This document shows, in pieces, positions 7,590 to 53,441 of a stretch of DNA of 64,000 bases. The translations under genes were made by a program, and so were the position numbers. The notes beneath the pieces were generated by a model. The model was not told where the DNA came from, did no database searches, and saw nothing but the letters and a program-made list of their open reading frames with translations. Location of the stretch: the NCBI GenBank assembly GCA_016748015.1, contig JAAOMT010000328.1:248001-312000 (forward strand), written 5' to 3'. Within the stretch, counting starts at the first letter, position 1. Each line of letters opens with the position of its first letter. Origin of the DNA: Geosiphon pyriformis uo1. Lineage: Eukaryota > Fungi > Glomeromycota.

Positions 7590-7824
7590 ATGAGCAGATA
7601 GGAAGAGTATTTTTGGTTTTGAATAAAACAGTGAACCGACTAAGTATGTATGGAGCAACTTTTTTTTCTCGCGGAATTAAAGGAGCTTAAGAATAAATTA
7701 GGACTTCAGTACTTTGATTTGCTTAATAATGCCTATCAATAAAAATACTAATCAGTGGCTAAGTAATGCTTATCAGATTCAAAATCGTGAAATTAAACTT
7801 CTCAAAATGCTGAGACCCCTACTC

Positions 7825-8153
7825 CACCTCCTCTATACCCATGTCTAATTCAAAGCAAAAAGAGGATCTTAAGCGACAAAAACAACGTCTCGTTCGATTC
7901 CCGAGACGAGCTTGACAGCAATATCGGCTCTGGCGTTAACTTCAAGCGCCAAGGGCTTAAGACCCTAATGGAACGATCAAGTCTTAGAGGTTGCCATTAC
8001 CCGCTGTGATCGGCTCTGCGTGTTTGCCTTTGACCTCTTCCAATATATTTTCTTGATGAGACCTCTGGCAGGCACAAATTCTTCTAGTAAATTCTTGCTG
8101 TCAATACAGTCTTCATTTGCCGCATGCAGGAAAGGAGAGCTTCTCGCTATTGA
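7825..8153 (+). pseudogene. tnpA: IS607-family serine recombinase (TnpA) pseudogene
   Basis: LLYTHV*..SKQKEDLKRQKQRL, NIGSGVNFKRQGLKTLME, EVAITRCDRLCVFAFDLFQYIF and ILAVNTVFICRMQERR match the IS607 TnpA motifs YARVSS-KQK-DL-RQ, DIGSG-NF-R-GL, DRL-RF-F and TVFS-R--G-R. The N-terminal HTH is not seen. Confidence 0.85.
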
Positions 8154-9416
8154 AGGGAACGCAGGAACAAAAAGCGCAAGGGAAAGGCAACAGCAACCCA
8201 TGGGAAACGCCAGAAGACAGAAGGCATTCTCAATCGCATGTTACTAGTCAAGATATATCACTATTTTCAGGAGCTTGGCGAGATTTGCCTTTAATACTGT
8301 AGTGGGATGGAACAAAAGGCGTCCCATCATTATGAAACAATATGGTATCATGGAACAGGGATGGTTAAAACCTATGATGTCTCAACAAAAACGTCTGCTC
8401 TTAAGAGGTTACTTAGGCTCAGCTCCTGCCAAAATCACAGACGAAGCGATTGATCAAGTATTGGTTCCGCGAAAGGAAATTATTAAACGTAATGCACAGC
8501 GACAACAAGGTGCATCAACAAATTATCTTGTTTTTCAATCTCGTAAGGCACTGTATCACACCATGATAATTCATGCTCGGAACTTTGCCAAATTATCTTA
8601 GAGTCGCTTCTATCTATCTTACCTTCACACTCCAGCAATTATGCAGATGTACATCGATACAAGGTAAAGATAATGAATTTTTTATGTTTTTTAAATTGTT
8701 TTACATCATTATTTATGTCACTTTATGCCATTTTTATTTCAAAGGATAAACATGTATTATGACCTCTTGACTTCAAAAAAAAAGCGTAAAAATAACAAAT
8801 GGTCTAATCCAGATTGCAAGCTCACTAACATTCGCAAAACTAAGGAGTGGAGGTATACGAGACGTGAAAACAGCTCCGCAGATGGCTCTGTTCATGCAGT
8901 CTCCATAGATCCTGGCATTCGCACTCCATTTACATGATATTTCCCAACAAAAGGTGTAGGTAAAATAGGCTCTTGTGACATCAAAGAAAGATGAATTAAA
9001 TACCTCAAAACGTAAGAAAGCTAAAGCCAGAAGATTAGAAAAGGCGATTGGGTGTATGCATCAAAAGATCTTACACTTGCAGTCAGAAATACACAGAAAG
9101 GCTGCTGCATTTTTCACTCACGAATTTGATGCTATTGTCATTCCCTTTGTGGTATCTGACATGATGAAAAACGAGAAAGAGGTCAAGACAGAAGAATTGG
9201 GAGTCCGATTTATCATCCAAAATGAGGCTTATACTTTTAAAACTTTTTAGCTGATGTGGAAATATCCAAGGAATCGGAGGATCTGAGGTGTACAGCCGTT
9301 GGAATTGTAAGCTTGTTATGAATAGAGATCTTCCTCCGGGGATTGCTTGGTCGTACAGTGACCATGCAGGAAATAATAGTATTACCTATAATTGATCCAT
9401 TCCGTATAACACTATA
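8154..9416 (+). pseudogene. Fanzor2/TnpB RNA-guided nuclease pseudogene
   Basis: RMLLVKIY..LARFAFN (TnpB N-terminus); VSIDPGIRTPFT (RuvC-I, Asp codon at 8908); IHRKAAAFFTHEFDAIVIPF (Pro at the canonical Glu site); QNEAYTFKT (relocated Glu at 9224); CGNIQGIGGSEVYSRWNCKLVMNRD (zinc finger + RuvC-III Asp at 9327); IFLRGLL tail. Confidence 0.88.
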
Positions 9417-9639
9417 AATAATATGATATCATTGATTAAAAACTATCACAACGCAGCAAATGATACACCCCCTGCTTGAGCCTGGGCAGGTCACTTAGAA
9501 GTTATGCCTAATTAATGTAATTGGTTATAAATAAAATATTTTCGAACAGATCATATATTCTAATATGATTTACTTGATTGCATACATCTGTAATTTTCTA
9601 GCTTTCTTTCTACTGCTCAATAGAGTACTTATTTCGTAA

Positions 9640-24000: not shown

Positions 24001-24077
24001 TAATGTGGTCATTGTAATTTGAACCAAAAAATCTAATAAAACATCTGCACATTTTGATCCGAACCAAACTATTATGC
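21052..24077 (-). mobile_element. 5'-truncated LINE with partial RT, RNase H and zinc finger; 11-bp TSD
   Basis: SPLLWRIFYDPLL, VFMDD, YRYLGI (RT); VNVYTDGSL and WHKIKGHSGIIGNERAD (RNase H); poly(A) at ~21052-21063. AACTTTTTAAT is duplicated at 21041-21051 and 24078-24088. The 3'UTR is homologous to the copy at 16466-16590. Confidence 0.9.
21747..22170. repeat. 212-bp tandem duplication inside the LINE
   Basis: 21747-21958 and 21959-22170 read identically (CTTACTATACAGATG...CAGTAAGCCC). Confidence 0.9.
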
Positions 24078-24645
24078 AACTTTTTAATAGTTATATAAAC
24101 AATGTTTTTTTTATTTGAAAAAAACATTAAATAATTAAAATTTAATTTCTTTTTTTTTATTACTTATTTCCTTATTTTTAAATATTTAATATTTTTATAA
24201 TACAAATTATTTATTGATATTTACGTTTTTTTTTTAATTTGTGTTATTAAAATTAATTTGAAAAGTTATTTGTTTGTTTTAGTAATTTATTAAATAAAAA
24301 ACAATTAAAAAACACAATAATATCTGTTATTAATCATAAAAATTACGAAATAAAACGTAAAATATTATTATTATCATTATTATTATTATTATTATTTTGT
24401 TAATAGCTTATTTTTTTTAAAAAAATTAATTATATATATTAAATTATAAAATCTAATTTTATTATTTTTATAATTACAATTAAAACAAAGAATAAAAAAT
24501 TTACAAATATTATTTTTCTTATAATAATTAATAAAGTTTTATTATAAAAAGTTTTTTTTATTGTAAAAATAATTAAACAAAATATTTTACATGTGTTTTT
24601 TTAAATATTAATAATACAAAATTGTTTTTAACAGTTTTTAAAGCA

Positions 24646-25985
24646 TTTTATTTTATTTTATGAGTACAATTTAATTATTATCTAGTATATAAAAGAAAAC
24701 TAAGTAATCTTAACTAAATATAATTTATGTATTTACTATATATAACTAGCTACTTAGACTAATTAAAACAATAGTATACATTTATATAAATACCAGCACT
24801 ATTATTTATATCTGAAAAAACAAACAAGTCTTATACAAACTAAAATCAATAACAAATAATTCAATAACACCAAGTAATTGAACAATTTTATTAGACAAAA
24901 CATTAAACAAACTATACAAAACACTTGACAAAATCTTTGTATTAAATTTGAACTTAAACAGCCATAATACACTATAATGTTTTTTAGCCAAACAGCAAAT
25001 AAAATCAACTACTACCAAAACTGTTTTTTTCTTATTACTAAAAACCAATACTGTCTTGTCAATTTAACTTCTAAAAACAAAAACTCTTGTACAAAATTAT
25101 GTGTATACTAATATCTAATATATATAATAAAAGAATTTAAAATACTAAGAATATTAAAAAAAGCAAATCTCTACTAAAGATTTTTACAATTCAATACATT
25201 TTAACAAAATTCTAAAACATACAAAAGCATTCTTTAAATAAGTAAAAACATGATTTAACAGTTCAATATTATCATATATTAAACACAAAATATTTAGATA
25301 ATTTTTGTTGTAAAGTTTTTTTCTGATAGCAACCAACAATTTTTTATAAACTACTTTTATTAAATATATATAAAATATAGCTAAAACTTTATTTGTAAAG
25401 TCAATAAACATATAAGAATCTAAATATCAAATCATAACAATACAAATCTAGTTAATTTTACAAATAAATAACAATTTTAGAGTCTAAATCTATTTTTCAC
25501 TAAACATAACAAACAAATTAATAAATATTATAAACAAAGTAATAAATATTGCCTAAAACAACCAGACTATCAGCCATAATAAATTTTTTATATATATTAA
25601 CAAAAAAAACCACATAAAACTATGTTGTATTACTAATAAAAACATTAATTTAGTCATTGTTAAAATCTTTTAAATAGTTTTTAACTTTTACTTGCTATAT
25701 AAAAATATTCTTAGACTTAATTAAATTAGTTATATAATGCTTTTTTAACTAATACTTGTTTTGAAAATTTGGTAACTACTGTTTAAGTTCTAAAACACAC
25801 ATATTTATAACAGCTTAATTGTCTGTATATACAATTACTAAATAAGATAAAAAACATATTCTATAGTCAATGCAATTATTTGCAATTTAATTATTGTTAA
25901 AAACAATAGTTTATAAAGTTCAATACTTATTTTTATGTTAGCATTAGAAAAATAAGCTGCAGTTCTATCAATTATATGGTTAATA
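24646..25985 (-). mobile_element. Heavily decayed LINE 3' fragment of the same family
   Basis: (TAAAA)n tail, eroded 3'UTR motif, YIYLIKVVYKKLLVAIRKKLYNKNYLNILC and RTAAYFS (RNase H region). Confidence 0.75.
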
Positions 25986-28900
25986 ATTTCTAAAGATTTT
26001 TGAATTTAAAGATTTTAGTTAAGTTTTTTGTATAATAAACAGAAATTTACTTAATAATTGTTTTTCCAATTTTTTTTTTAGCATAAAAATTGGTTTAATT
26101 TGGCAGTTATGCTTTTTTAGTAAGCTATTCTTAAGTTTTTACTTTTGTTTTATGGATTTTTTATTAGACTATTCTTGACATCAATATTTTAATACTTAAT
26201 CTTTTAATTAATTAATATTTAATATAAAACAAAAAAAAAGAAAGTAAAAGAAAAATAAAAAATTGGGATTTTATTAATAACCATAATTAAAAGCTATTTT
26301 TTTAGTATAATTAAGTAGTAAATATTATTAGTATAAATTGCTAATAAAGTTAGAGAATAATAATTTTAATCTATGATAAAAATAATATAAATTAAATGAT
26401 AAAGCAATAATTTTATTTAATATTTAAATAATTTCTTTTAAGATATAAAAAACTATTTTTTAAAAAGAAAAATATATTATTAATATTTATTGTTTAGCTA
26501 ATTAAGAACTTGTTAAAGTGTAAATTAAATGAATATTTTTTTTTATTCCTAATATTATTGTTATATATACATAATTTTTATTATATAAGATCTTATATAT
26601 TTCTACTTTTTTCTATATTATTTTCTAAAACTGTGCTTATTTCTAAGCAATATGCTATGATTTTTTGAAAATATGCTTATTTTTTGTTAATATACACATT
26701 TCTAAAAATATGTTATAATTTTCTGAAAATGTGTTTACATATTAAGTACTATTTTCTTATTAATTTATTTTTATAATCTGTTTTTTTTATTTTTTTTTTA
26801 TACTTTTTTTCTATAAATAATATTATTTTTTTCTTTAATTTTAAGCTCTGTTAAAATTCTTATTTTGAATTAATTTTATTACTTTTTTTTAATATTGTGT
26901 GTTTAATTTTGGTTTTTAGGTTTTTAAATTAGAAGTTGGTCATTTTTTCTCATTGGTTAATAGTTATTGTTTCTATTTTTGTATGTAGTAGTATTTTTGA
27001 ATAATTTTTAAATATAGTATATAGTTAATAAATTGTTTTAATATATAGTATAAAACTTCTTTCAATAAAGTTTTTAATTTATTGTATTATTTATTAATTG
27101 AATGTTTTTTTAAATTTGTTTATATACAATTTCTAAATATTTAATTTTTGTCTTAGTTAATAATAATATTATGTCTTTGAAAAATGTTTTATTTATAACT
27201 TTTAATTTTTTTTAGTCAATTTTTTTGTTAGAATAATATTTGGTATTTTCTTAAAAATGTTTTTTACTTTTTTTATAATTTTATCTGATTAGTAATTTGG
27301 TTGTTTCTGTGATTGTTAATATAAACTGCTCTTTGTTTTTTTTTCTTTGTTTGTGTTTTTATAACAAATTGTTTAATAATTAATAATTATTTCCATGTTT
27401 AATTGTTGCTAATTTATTGTCTAAAATAATTGTTGTGCTAATGTGTAAATATGATTTGAAATTTTCATTTTTTCTGATTTTTTTTGTTGCATGTATTGGT
27501 TTTTTATATACTATTCTAATAGCTTAGATTAATATGTTTGTTTCAATAATTATGATTGGTTCCAAATCTTATAAAATTTTATCTAGTTTAATTAGTATTT
27601 ATTATATTTTTAGTTGTGAAATATTATTGATAAAAAATAATACTATATTATAATATAGTTTTAATTAATTATTATATATTGTTTTAGTTAAAATTTTATT
27701 GATTTATCTTAACTTATATGCTCTGTTTTCCAGAATTTTTTCAATATAAAATAAACTGTTCTATTTAAAATCAAATTTTCTACTTTATTGTTTTTTTGCT
27801 TTGGTATAATATAAAAATATTTTGTTTTCAATCTTGAATTTAACTGGTTTGTTTAATAACTAATTATTATGTTATTTTTTTTATTTTTTTTGTGATCTTT
27901 GTATATTATCAACTGGTTTTTTTCTAGTGTTTTTATTAAGTAATAAGTTTTTTACAACAGTGTTTTTTGATAATTAGTTTTTGTTATTGGTTTTGTTGAA
28001 TATATATAAATATTTATTTTTACTGATAGTATTACTGTTTTATTATATATTAACTTAAATAGTATTGTTTATGTGGTATTCTGCTTTATTGTTCAATAAG
28101 CAAATAGTACTAATAATATAAACAAATTCTATTTGTCTTGGTTTTTTTGGCAGATTTTGGTTATTGTTTTACACAATATTCTATTAAACTTTTTGATTAA
28201 GTTATTGGTTTATAGATAATATAAAAATAATAATAGTTTTTTAATTTCAAATTTTTAACTTAATTCTGTTAATGTTCTGTTTATAAAGTGAATTTTTTGT
28301 TTGACAACAATTTTTTTAGACATTTGTGTTAACAAATTAAATCTTGGTATATAAATTCAGTTATAAATTTTGTATTTGTTTTTTAAATAACTTTAGTTTT
28401 TAACCATTTTGTGAGATAGTTCATGGCAATTGCTATATATAAGTTGTTTTTGCTGGTTATTGTTAATAATTTAATTAATTTAATTTCAATTTAATTAAAT
28501 AATTGTTTCACTTTAATTGGTTTTAGTGATTTATGGAGTTTTGTTCTTTTTTTTTTAATAAACATTACAATTTTGAATATATTGAATAATATTTGAATAT
28601 ATTAATGGTCAATAATATCTTTTTCTGGTTTTTTCTATGATAACTTTTTTATAAAAGTGTTTTGTTGTTGAATTTAAGTACATACTAAACAATATTGTTT
28701 TTTTTTCTGGTTCTATAATAATTTTAAGTGGTTAATTTAATTTTTTTCTGTTTTTTTAATATAATATATTTTGGTAAATAATAAAATATTTTGATTGTTG
28801 TTTTATGTTGTTTTGTTTTTTTTGAGATAATTTCTTCTTAAATTATTGAGTATTAATATAATATTGGAGTTATTAATATTTTTGTATATTTTTTCATTTT

Positions 28901-47768: not shown

Positions 47769-50700
47769 GGCTTCTCTTTGGAGATAAAACCTCTTTTATT
47801 TGTGTTTAAAGAAGTAAATAATAAGTTTATTACTTTTGAATACAGTTTTAATAATCTTATGAAACAAATTAGTAAGTTGGCTAAGAGATTAAATATATTT
47901 GGGCCAATAGTTTCTCAGTCTAGTTTTGAATGTCAGCTATTGGTGATTTTTTTATTACAGAATCAAAAAACAAATATAGTAATAAATAAGAATTTAAGTA
48001 CAGTCACTAATGGCAAAACTGTTATAAAAGTAAAGTATTTGGATTAGTCAATTGTCAAGAAATTTAAAGATAAAATGAACAATTTGTCAAGTACAATTAT
48101 GAACTTACTGGCCAAAATAGATAATAAAAACTTAAGTTTAAATATTTTTCTTTAATAATAACTAATTTAATCTAGAAAATTGCTATATGTAATATTAGAA
48201 ATATAAATAATTTAGCCAAGCAAAAAAATATTATATAATAGTATATAAATTTTGAGAACATAATATCTATTATAACTAAAACAAAACTTAAGTCTAATGC
48301 CAAGTCATAGATAATAAATAAGTTTAATAAAGTTCATATTTTTACATTTGGTATGGAAAATAGCTTTTTTAGTACTAATATGACTATTATTATAAACAAT
48401 TCTTTGGCTCATTATGTTATGAAAGTGAAGGAAATTTCTGGTAAAATAATTTTAGTTCACTTTTTGTTCAAAGACAAGCTGTTAGTTGTGATCTTGGATT
48501 TGTATACTAGAGCATTAATTGGAACCAGATTTATGTAAATCTCTAATGTTAACTTTTTTATTTTTAAGACAACTGATTTTAGTTCATTTATAATCTTGGA
48601 TGATAATTTTAATAAGAATAGTTTCAAAAAGTGTGCAAATCTTAGTAAATGTCCAAATATAAATTTAGTAAATTCTTTTAGTGAATATTTTTTGATTAGA
48701 AATCTTATTTGGTACAATTTTAAAGAAATTAAAAAAGTTATTAATTATATTTTTTTGAGTAAAAATTTACTTTTAGCTATTGTAAATCATAATGTTAATT
48801 CTGTTTCTGATTTCCTTAGTACCAACCACAAGGCAGTTTTAATTCAGATTGGTTTAGGAGACTCATTAAATATTCATTTAACAATGTTTACAAACAGACT
48901 AATAAGAATCATTGAAAATTTAAAACTAAAAATACAGATAATGTTAAATAAATAAGATTTAAGAATTGTTTCTTTTTTATATTATTAATGATTCAATACA
49001 AGTTTTCAAAGACTAAGAATTTTTAGGACTTAAATACAATATAAAAAATCTTAAATAAAGTAGTGTTACAAGTAATTATTTAGAGTGTGGAAACAAATAA
49101 CAAATTCATAACTTAGTGCTCAATAGCTTAGTAATATTGGTAATTTTTGAAGATTTTTGTAATTTGAAGGTTTTGGTTAAGTTATTTGTATAATGAACAG
49201 AGATTTAATTGCTGTTTTAGTACTCTTTCAAAAGCTTATTCTATGAATTTCTTTCTTAGCTTAATGGCTGGTTTTTCTTGATAAACTATCCTTAATTTTC
49301 AAGTTTCTATTCTTGTTTTTCAGATCTTTTATCAGTCTTTCTTGACATTAATAACTTCATATGTTAATCTTTTAATTAATTAGTAAACAACAAAATAAAA
49401 TAAAAAAAAAATAAAAAAAATAAAAAAAAATAAAAAATTAGTATTCTGTTAATAGTTATAATCAAGAACTATTGGTCTAGTGTGATTAAGTGTTGAATTT
49501 TATCAACATGGAGTGTTAATAAAATAGAAATGATTAATATTTTTTAATCAAATAATAATAATATAAATTCAAGTAATAATTAATATTTTATTGATATGTA
49601 ATTTGATTTTGTTTCAAGTTATAGAAAACTATTTTTTAAAAGAAGAAGTATTAGATAATTAATTGATTATTGGTATTGATTTTAAACTGAATTCTTTAGG
49701 AATTACTTTTTCTGCTTTTTAATACTTTTACTATATATATATAATTTATATTATATGAAATTTTTTGAATTTCTTTAATTTTTTTAGCCAGAAATTCTGA
49801 AATTCCTGGAATTCTGTAATTTTTTAGAAAAATTCTGAAATTTTTCTTTTACTACACCTGTTTTTAATTGGCTATTTTTATATCTTTATTAAGAATTTCT
49901 AAATTTTTATGAATAACAGTAGTAGTAAATATGGCTAATAAAATTTTTTTCAGACATTGATACAGTAAATTTAATTACTTAAGAAATAACAGTTTTCTGA
50001 ATTTTACAAGCTAAAATTGTTAGTTTTTAAGTTGTCTAAAATATTAAATTTAGACAATAAACTAAAATTTGATTATTTTATTAAGATTTAATTGTCTATT
50101 AATAAAGTAAAATTTTTTAAGATTAGCAACTTGATTAACAATAGTGCAAATTTTGTGAATGTGATTAGACATCTGTCAATAATTAAGAAAAATTATTACA
50201 AATCCAAATATTATGAGTTTGAAACAGCAAAAAATATGGCTATTAAAAAAACAATTAAAAAACACATAAAAAATTTTAATTCTAATGAAGACAGTATAAT
50301 CAGGAGTGTTTTAGAACAGCCATTTCAGAAAATAATTCTGAACTATTTAGTGATTGAAGAAAAATTAGTTTTAAAGCTAAATAAGATAAAGCTTAAAATC
50401 AACAAAATTATAGAGAATTGGATAAAAATATATGAAATTCTTTTAGCTCTGTTTGATTTATGGACTTGTTAATATGTGTTCTTGGCATATATAAATAAAG
50501 ATGTTTTTTATAATATAATAAATATTATTAATTTGGAAATTTAATTTCAGTAATTAGTAGTCTACTTAATAACAAAGTGGTTAGTCTATTTAATATAATC
50601 AATAAACTTTGGAAACATTATAATATTACAGTAATTAATTGTCTCTTGAATTTATTAAACAATTGTTTAACTTTTAGTAATATTCTAGCTTTCTAAAAAA

Positions 50701-53441
50701 GAGCATAGGTTTCAATGATTCTTAAATTATATAATTAGAATGGTATTTTAACAAACATATAGTCCATAATATTAATTGAAACAGCTAAGAAAATTTTGTC
50801 CAAAATTCTGTCAGATTGTATTTTATCTGCTTGTAATAAATTTAATGTTTTCCATAATAATAATTTTTTAATGTTAAAAAGTACTTTAACTTAATTTTCA
50901 GTGTTTGCTGTTGGTTTGATTGTGAAAAATGTTTTAGAAAAAGACCAAGAGCTTTAGTTAGTTTTACAAAACATGTATAAAACTTATAATTTAGTTAGAT
51001 AGCATTATTTAAAAACTAGTTTGAAATGCATTAAGATATATAACAAGTTTATTAATTTTTTTGGTAACATATATAAGAACAAAATCAATAGAATAATAAC
51101 AGATTTTGGTTTTTTAAACAGTTATAAAATACATAATAAGTTAAATTAAAGTGAAGTTTTCTTATTACTTCTTTGGAAAATTTTTTATGATTTTTTATTG
51201 TGTAAAGTTAAAAGACAGAAACATTTGTATAAATACTAAATTAACACCAATTTTGTAGCCAAAACAGACAAAATAGAAATCAGTACAGAAAATTTTTTTT
51301 TTTATAATGAGTGCTTTTGTAGATAACACTATTTAGATAGAAAATAGTTAGACTTTAACACAATACATTCTGGATCTAGCTGATCAGTTTTTTAAAATTA
51401 ATAATATTTGCATTAACAATGAAAAAACAGTTGTAATTTCCATAAACCAGAAAGTTATAATTGTTTCATTATATATTGGTGGCCAACTTTTTTTTATTGT
51501 CAAGCATAAAGGATCTCACAAGTACTTAAAATTTTTTTTATTAACAGAAGATATGTTTAAGTCAAGTTTTACTAAGACATATTTAGATATCAAGTTTTTT
51601 TTAAACATAATACTTAGGAAAACTTTATTAAATAAACAATTCTTCTACTTAGTTTTAGCAATTTTACAGCCTATAATTAGTTATTAAATACAATTTAGTT
51701 TTGTATTTAAAAGTATGTGTCAAAAGTAAGATGTCATAATTAAAAAAAAACTTAAGTTTAAGGCTAATTTGCCAAGAAACTTTCTTAATAAGACTTTGTA
51801 TTATTTATCTTTGTATAAGCTTAAATTATTTAAATAATTACAAGTAAAAAACAAGATAGCTTTATTGATTTGGTTTTTTAATATGATGGAAATTCTTGGT
51901 TATTTATTTGTATACAGATTTTTAAATTTACAGATTACAGACTAAACACCAAAAAACTTACTGCAATTTTCTGTCAAATTAAAAATTAACTCTGTAAATA
52001 GTTTTTTGGTAGACATAATAAGAATATTTTTGGACAACAATAGTTCTTTAACAAATGAATTATCCTGTGTATTTTGCTTTTCTGGCCATTTTTTAATGTC
52101 TAATATTTTGAGTAATTTATATTATTTTGATGTGATTTAATTTTTAAAGCAATTTGATATTGTTTTTAATTATTAATTGTTGGATAAACATGACTTGATT
52201 ATGAATTAAAAAATTTTTTATTGTTAAAAAAAGCTGAATTTAAAAGGCCTAATATTAGTGTGGTTTTTAAAAACTTTAATTTATATGAATAATCTTTCTG
52301 TTAACTTTATAAAAAGTAGTTTTAACTCTGGCTGTTCAGATTTTTATGGCTCAAAAAAATTTAGATGTTTAGAAACATTTGTACAAATTATAAACAGAAG
52401 AAATTAACATATATACTAATGGTTCTTTGAATAATTTGAGTATTGTTAATATAATAAACAGAGCAGCAGCATATTTTTCTAATGTTGAAGTAGATTTGGG
52501 TGTTAAAGTTTCCAGTTTGCTGTTATTAATAATGTTAGAATTACAGATTATTGTTTTGGCTTTAAAATATGTTCTCTTTTTTTGTTTAATAGTTTTATAT
52601 ACAAACAGTCAAACTGCTATAAATACATATATATTAGAGCTTATGTTTTATATATCTGATTTCTAAAATAAATACTGGATTAAAAGATGGCATGTGGCTA
52701 ACTTAATTAAATCTAAGAACATTTTTGTAAAGTAAATAAAAATTAAAGACTACTTAAAAAATGTTAACAATAATAAAGCCAATGTTCTTATAAGTGTTAT
52801 AGTGCAATCTGGTATTTTTTTTACTTATTAGTATGTATAAAAAGTTTATCTTGGCAGATGGTTTAATTATTTTAAGTTATATTCATTATTTTGTTCATAA
52901 TATTTATTAAACAGTTAATTAAACTTGATGAGAAATAGGTCTGAATATAAAAATTTTACAGGATTCTTTTATTTGAAACATTAATTAACACTATACTACT
53001 TTAATTTGGCACCTTAACTCTCATATGTTTTCTGGTTTTATCAGCAAATCTTTGGCAAGTCTTTATATATATCTAATAAAAGCAGTTTATAGGAGACTAC
53101 CAACTGCAGTCAGAAAAAAACTATTTAATAAGGAGTATTCAAGCATATTGTGTCTTTTTTACAGTAATGTTAAACTGTCTAATTATGTTTTCATTTGTTC
53201 AAAAAATGCTTTAATGCTTTAAAATTTTGTTAGATTATGTCAATTGTGGAAATTTTTGGTAAAATCTTGCTTTTTACCAACTTTTTTAGTATTATATACT
53301 CTTTTTTTGGAAATATTAAACATTAGTATTTATGAAGTTCTGTGCAAAAAGTTTGTTTTTAAAGATTAAATTAATAAAGCAACATTGAAGTTTAAAAATA
53401 AGAAAAAAACTATAATAATAATAACTGATTTTGTTTAATAT
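47769..53441 (+). mobile_element. Heavily decayed near-full-length LINE (end of ORF1, AP endonuclease, RT, RNase H, zinc finger), inserted in O and interrupted by a solo LTR and element C
   Basis: KIAICNIR and INYIFLS...STNHKAV (APE); IILIETAKKILSKILS, LLWKIFYDFLL, AFVDN (RT); RAAAYFS (RNase H); YLIKAVYRRLPTAVRKKLF. Confidence 0.8.
49064..49918 (-). repeat. Solo LTR related to LTR-A, TSD GTAG
   Basis: TGTTACA...GAATAACA termini; GTAG at 49060-49063 and 49919-49922; reverse-complement similarity to 29081-29893. Confidence 0.82.

Follow-up and report, generated by a model that had tools for sequence, protein, structure and literature searches.

A decayed Fanzor2 gene of Geosiphon pyriformis carries a probable ancestral spliceosomal intron

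We analyzed a 64,000-nucleotide stretch of contig JAAOMT010000328.1 from the fungus Geosiphon pyriformis (hereafter the window) and found that the segment at positions 8664-8744, inside a decayed Fanzor2 gene, is very probably an ancestral U2-type (GT-AG) spliceosomal intron that now lies in a dead copy of its element. An earlier note, made from the letters of this DNA, had proposed a host-type GT-AG intron in a Fanzor gene of the IS607 type. This proposal is supported by paralogues in the same genome, by intact relatives, by sister lineages that are contiguous at the site, and by an annotated gene model.

The element in the window is the relic of an IS607-type Fanzor2 ('IS607EU') transposon, comprising TnpA and Fanzor2 (Table 1). 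Three-frame translation together with the family consensus revealed the remains of a serine recombinase and, downstream of it, a TnpB-like gene. The three-frame translation of the TnpA relic contains the motifs SKQKEDLKRQ, IGSGVNFKRQGLKTL, and DRLCVFAFDLFQYI, which are the same in the family consensus and in the relative L053; TnpA pieces of L053, placed upstream of its Fanzor, match the Pfam families MerR (31 bits) and Resolvase (35 bits). Exon 2 retains RuvC-I (SIDPGIRTPFT) and RuvC-II (QNEAYT). The window copy is too decayed for Pfam, in which its stop-free pieces had no meaningful match, and the family was therefore identified via sibling copies and relatives. Sibling copies and intact relatives match PF07282 (Cas12f1-like TNB), located in exon 2 of the intact relatives, with 72-78 bits and PF12323 with 32 bits, and exon 1 of the relative L060 matches HTH_OrfB_IS605. 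A PF07282 scan of the Geosiphon genome matched 68 places, several of which are sibling copies of the window element. The best solved structure for the full-length relative P0044 is 9b0l, the mimivirus 'TnpB-like protein L79' (E 4.7e-19). In relatives, the RuvC-II glutamate lies six residues ahead of the zinc finger (QNEAYTSKTC, QNEAYTSKTCSWCG), and the window copy retains QNEAYTFKTF at RuvC-II. A review (PMC13565253) lists such a rearranged site, with about six residues from the glutamate to the zinc finger, among the traits of Fanzors. As a separate observation on the start of the gene, the frame of Fanzor exon 1 in L053 (631-1725) stays open for ∼200 codons further upstream, where it overlaps the TnpA ORF, which is in a different frame, and the same long overlapping frame lies upstream of the nuclease in other lineages; L053 and the proteins P0051 and P0059 have no ATG near the lysine/arginine-rich nuclease start.

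Table 1. Parts and lesions of the Fanzor2 element in the window, and the corresponding segments of intact relatives. A slash marks a border between exon and segment.
Feature	Position	Strand	Remarks
TnpA relic (IS607-type serine recombinase)	7826..8170 (approximate)	+	broken by stops and frameshifts
Fanzor2 exon 1 relic	8170..8663 (start approximate)	+	lysine/arginine-rich stretch, HTH/REC, first WED strands
Deletion in YPNHPQKQLLKRWMG motif region	exon 1 relic	+	
Deletion, ∼72 nt	8395/8396	+	exon 1; nearly all sibling copies have the sequence that is missing here
Stop TAG	8599-8601	+	exon 1; W in relatives
Deletion, 1 nt	8639/8640	+	exon 1
Candidate intron	8664..8744	+	81 nt, GT...AG, 18.5% GC; reconstructed as phase 0 in the family ancestor
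Fanzor2 exon 2 relic	8745..9400 (end approximate)	+	WED strands, RuvC-I, RuvC-II, zinc ribbon
Stop TGA in ancestral frame	8760-8762	+	exon 2; W in relatives
Insertion, +1 nt in A-run	∼8775-8785	+	exon 2
Deletion, 21 nt	∼8809	+	exon 2
Stop TGA	8935-8937	+	exon 2; W of FTWY
Frameshifts and deletions	after ∼8960	+	exon 2
Segment in relatives L054, L055, L056, L058 (different samples)			HRHK AAG/GTATGT...ATAAG/GAT; 82 nt; exon 1 open for at least 165 aa; exon 2 277 aa to stop
Segment in relative L060			PRYK AAG/GTAAAT...ATAAG/GAT; 85 nt; exon 1 open for 281 aa; exon 2 274 aa to stop

The window copy is a long-dead relic. The earlier note had spoken of a Fanzor ORF, but stops, frameshifts, and deletions leave no intact ORF in this copy. 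Three tryptophan codons have turned into stops (8599, 8760, and 8935). Across window positions 7700-9500 and 26 sibling copies, we counted 1896 GC-to-AT versus 822 AT-to-GC changes. RIP-like decay was considered and rejected: GC-to-AT changes dominate, yet without a strong dinucleotide preference, the rate being only mildly raised at CpG and CpC. The loss of ∼72 nt in exon 1 causes a recurrent alignment break that could be mistaken for an intron. We considered a second, lost intron at this break (8396-8402) and rejected it, as the extra 72 nt of the siblings are coding (LLFDDVSAIWGERKFCRAIVRLGM).

Rereading the sequence bore out the description of the candidate as an AT-rich GT...AG segment with in-frame stops; in the earlier note's frame, TAA, TAA, and TGA stand at its 5' end. 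The 5' border is ACAAG/GTAAAG and the 3' border TTTCAAAG/GAT, that is, AAG/GTAAAG...CAAAG/G, and the flanks have 38-41% GC. T-rich 3' portions are present, and by eye the branch point is only a weak or loose match to motifs of the yTnAy or TTAAT-like type. The neighbors of the element are a Skp1-like and a QCR7-like gene, each with short AT-rich GT-AG introns (177 and 66 nt in the former, 202 and 76 nt in the latter). These four host introns have 21-33% GC, begin with GTAAGT, GTAAAC, GTAATT, and GTATGT, and end with CAG, AAG, AAG, and AAG. Compared with them, the segment has the size and composition of a nearby host intron, as had been claimed, and similar end motifs. Protein alignment also breaks where an intron would predict it: P0044 aligns to window positions 8395-8646 in exon 1 and resumes at 8770-8988 in exon 2, bracketing the segment.

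The Geosiphon genome (128 Mb, 792 contigs) contains 112 matches to the element, with 67-75% identity and spread across many contigs, and every copy examined is broken. An AT-rich segment occurs at the same place in ∼24 other genomic copies (27 non-redundant copies were aligned), which is nearly every copy that extends across the site. Where complete, it measures 57-99 nt and has 12-25% GC; the 5' GT is present in 21 of 23 and the 3' AG in 20 of 27 copies. The consensus of the ends is CACAAG/GTAAAGATAAT...TTTATTTTTAAG/GATAAACATG, and in the family consensus an in-frame TAA begins at the base after AAG/G. Taken together, the aligned copies show that the ancestor of the family already had the segment. 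Because all copies are neutrally decaying pseudogenes, the retention of GT and AG among them reflects ancestry and not selection. Decayed intron-less lineages also occur in this genome. One sibling copy, G000:C662, is covered by an NCBI entry from Geosiphon pyriformis (G9A89_013499, P0062; annotated as a hypothetical protein), which maps to it at 98-100%. The gene model of this entry is spliced as IHRQK/DKHILSPLRF, with the homologous GTAAAG...TTAAG segment removed in phase 0 at the same sites. Having been predicted on a decayed copy, the model is not independent RNA proof; it adds a second predicted intron upstream, which looks like a device for skipping a stop codon.

To find relatives, we queried a word search with a stop-free part of exon 2 taken from a sibling copy, searched again with exon 1 of a relative, and compared the DNA of metagenome contigs; further protein matches came from Rhizophagus, Gigaspora, Glomus, and Cetraspora. 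Relatives of the L054 type and L060 have intact exons and carry segments at an identical codon boundary, in phase 0, matching the Geosiphon family (Table 1). Neither segment has a length that is a multiple of 3, and both contain stops. When copies and homologues are aligned at the GT and AG, the ends recur in the sibling copies and in the L054 and L060 lineages. The 120-nt exon flanks are 69-78% identical among the Geosiphon consensus, L054, and L060 (z 7.5-11.6 versus shuffles); the intron segments of the same three resemble one another no better than shuffled sequence does (z 0-0.9). Exon 1 (dN/dS 0.19) and exon 2 (dN/dS 0.13) show purifying selection between L054 and L060. Exons that are under selection across an untranslatable, diverged segment imply that both halves are maintained as protein, which is the signature of a real intron. 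Two protein searches, with exon 2 and exon 1 as queries, returned no spliced-form protein of the intron-bearing lineages. In the exon 2 protein tree, built to test for a single intron gain, the base is not resolved, and neither is the grouping of the three lineages with the intron as one clade.

Sister lineages are contiguous in DNA at this site (P0044, P0045, P0046, P0053, P0054, L051, L052, L059, and L075). They read HRHK-PTTIDNNKRA-LWPLHF or variants of it, with 4-7 codons in place of the intron at HRHK/D, and they are single ORFs of 469-493 aa. The segment could alternatively be an unspliced insertion or spacer that splits the nuclease gene, either yielding separate products or marking a non-autonomous, dead element mobilized in trans. 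We consider this unlikely. Although the broken state of every copy in the Geosiphon genome would fit a dead element, and in L053, a variant of the L054 type, the segment begins with AT and not GT (and TnpA also has a stop), a spacer would not explain the purifying selection on both halves around a fully diverged sequence, nor why the GT and AG ends and the AAG/G context are kept in three lineages. Exon 2 moreover has no conserved start codon, with none near its beginning in L060, and the segment-free homologues are continuous proteins. We therefore favor an intron over an unspliced spacer.

Reconstruction from the family and its relatives indicates that the ancestral phase of the intron is 0, as AIYAYAHRHK/DKHVLWPLHFEKKRKNNKWP (HRHK/DKHVLWPLHF). 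In Geosiphon copies, the modal distances are 132 nt between the FQSRK codons and the GT and 51 nt between the AG and the KWPNP codons, identical to L054. In the window copy, the spacings are 131 and 52 nt, due to the single-nucleotide loss at 8639/8640 and the gain in the A-run. Excision of the segment from the window copy fuses MQMYIDTR in frame with INMYYDLL, and the join MYIDTR/INMYYDLL reported in the earlier note is thus literally in frame; however, it is an off-frame product, because the two compensating indels make this phase-2 join run off-frame between them. Exon spacing is in frame in only 5 of the 12 measurable Geosiphon copies. Removal of the segment restores the frame in the intact L054 and L060, but in the window copy it does so only through the two compensating indels, and other stops remain.

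The dependence of the window copy's in-frame join on two indels would also fit a different view, in which GT and AG are paired only by chance in an AT-rich, decayed pseudogene and mean nothing biologically. The copy contains 68 GT..AG pairs at 40-200 nt spacing, 4 of which leave 8602-8934 open, and the pattern within this copy by itself is only suggestive. Chance is nevertheless very improbable, as the ∼24 sibling copies, and also intact relatives sampled elsewhere, have the segment with its ends at the matching position. A self-splicing group I/II intron, conceivable from the union of TnpB elements with group I introns in IStrons (PMC10690162), has next to no probability and is excluded in practice by the length of only 81 nt and the absence of structure, with zero Rfam matches in window positions 7700-9600 (E up to 1), a fold no better than that of shuffled sequence (z 0.36), and an internal sequence that is not conserved between lineages.

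Other intron positions were seen among the relatives. L075 carries at 826-916 a 91-nt GT-AG segment with 9% GC (GTATGA...TTTTAG), in phase 2 between EALTAR and DNIINH, and its Fanzor2 exons are open. L076 is 95-99.6% identical to L075, lacks exactly these 91 nt (at ∼846), and has one 469-aa ORF; it comes from JGI sample 3300012212, which may be a soil metatranscriptome and for which a literature search gave no match. As a transcript, L076 would represent a fungal Fanzor2 that is active and spliced; as DNA, it would reflect a very recent and precise gain or loss of an intron inside a DNA transposon. With HRHK/D common to three lineages and the L075/L076 pair, introns might be turning over in living Fanzor2 transposons of Glomeromycotina-like fungi, a possibility that we put forward only tentatively. 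In L051, an AT-rich tract at positions 1-63, where the contig is cut, ends in AACTAATTTTAG/GAACAAG, ∼35 codons upstream of the HRHK/D site, and resembles the 3' border of an intron at a further position.

The comparison with relatives and the intron-bearing flanking genes also support the claim of long nuclear residence, as opposed to contamination or recent transfer from an endosymbiont. Besides these flanking genes, the marks of nuclear residence are the presence of more than 100 copies over many contigs and the 98-100% match to a Geosiphon pyriformis protein. Hence, the Fanzor relics of the Geosiphon genome appear to be neither contamination nor a recent endosymbiont transfer. Elsewhere in the window, positions 24001-28000 (15-17% GC) and 48001-53000 (∼20% GC) are very AT-rich, the remainder having 30-38% GC, and there is a strong negative GC skew from ∼30 kb onward.

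Overall, our analysis suggests that in Geosiphon-type (Glomeromycotina) fungi an IS607-like DNA transposon had an intron in phase 0 within its gene for Fanzor2, the eukaryotic TnpB. The transcript of the active ancestor would have needed splicing between HRHK and DKHVLWPLHF, which would link the N-terminal HTH/REC/WED half to the half with RuvC and the zinc ribbon, and we infer from the sequence comparisons that the spliceosome removed the segment. Because the element moves as DNA, the intron would have been copied at every transposition. GC-to-AT substitutions and indels later degraded the window copy and all genomic copies seen, leaving the intron without function there. This one traceable intron would indicate that an RNA-guided nuclease gene of prokaryotic origin has spent enough time in fungal nuclei to become dependent on the spliceosome. 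The practical value is modest and lies in a correct exon structure (phase 0, HRHK/DKHV) for annotating such elements. The intact L054 and L060 types are candidate compact fungal Fanzor2 nucleases after removal of the intron.

Intron capture by Fanzors was already published in 2023, and the Geosiphon intron is a case of it and not a new principle. The same capture was reportedly described for fungal and other Fanzors by Saito and colleagues in Nature in 2023. Fanzor genes were found to have captured introns at host-like densities, which was read as long nuclear adaptation (Jiang et al. 2023, Sci Adv, PMC10530073). In that work, AUGUSTUS and Spaln served for bulk intron prediction, the intron-bearing tested example was Fanzor1c of Chlamydomonas, and viral and tested Fanzor2 genes had no introns. 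The Geosiphon element shares with those Fanzors that it is a TnpB-derived RNA-guided nuclease gene in a eukaryote with spliceosomal introns; here, in contrast, a single intron position was traced by its presence and absence across lineages of an IS607-type Fanzor2 in Glomeromycotina-like fungi. It resembles the Fanzor2/IS607EU protein L79 of the Acanthamoeba polyphaga mimivirus (9b0l) in the structure match of P0044, its linkage to TnpA, and the position of the RuvC-II glutamate. Unlike the viral and tested Fanzor2 genes, the fungal family has one intron, and related lineages have others. Bacterial IStrons (PMC10690162) likewise tie an intron to an IS607/IS605-type RNA-guided nuclease element. 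There, the entire element acts as a ribozyme and splices itself out of the host mRNA, whereas here a short, unstructured intron interrupts the nuclease gene.
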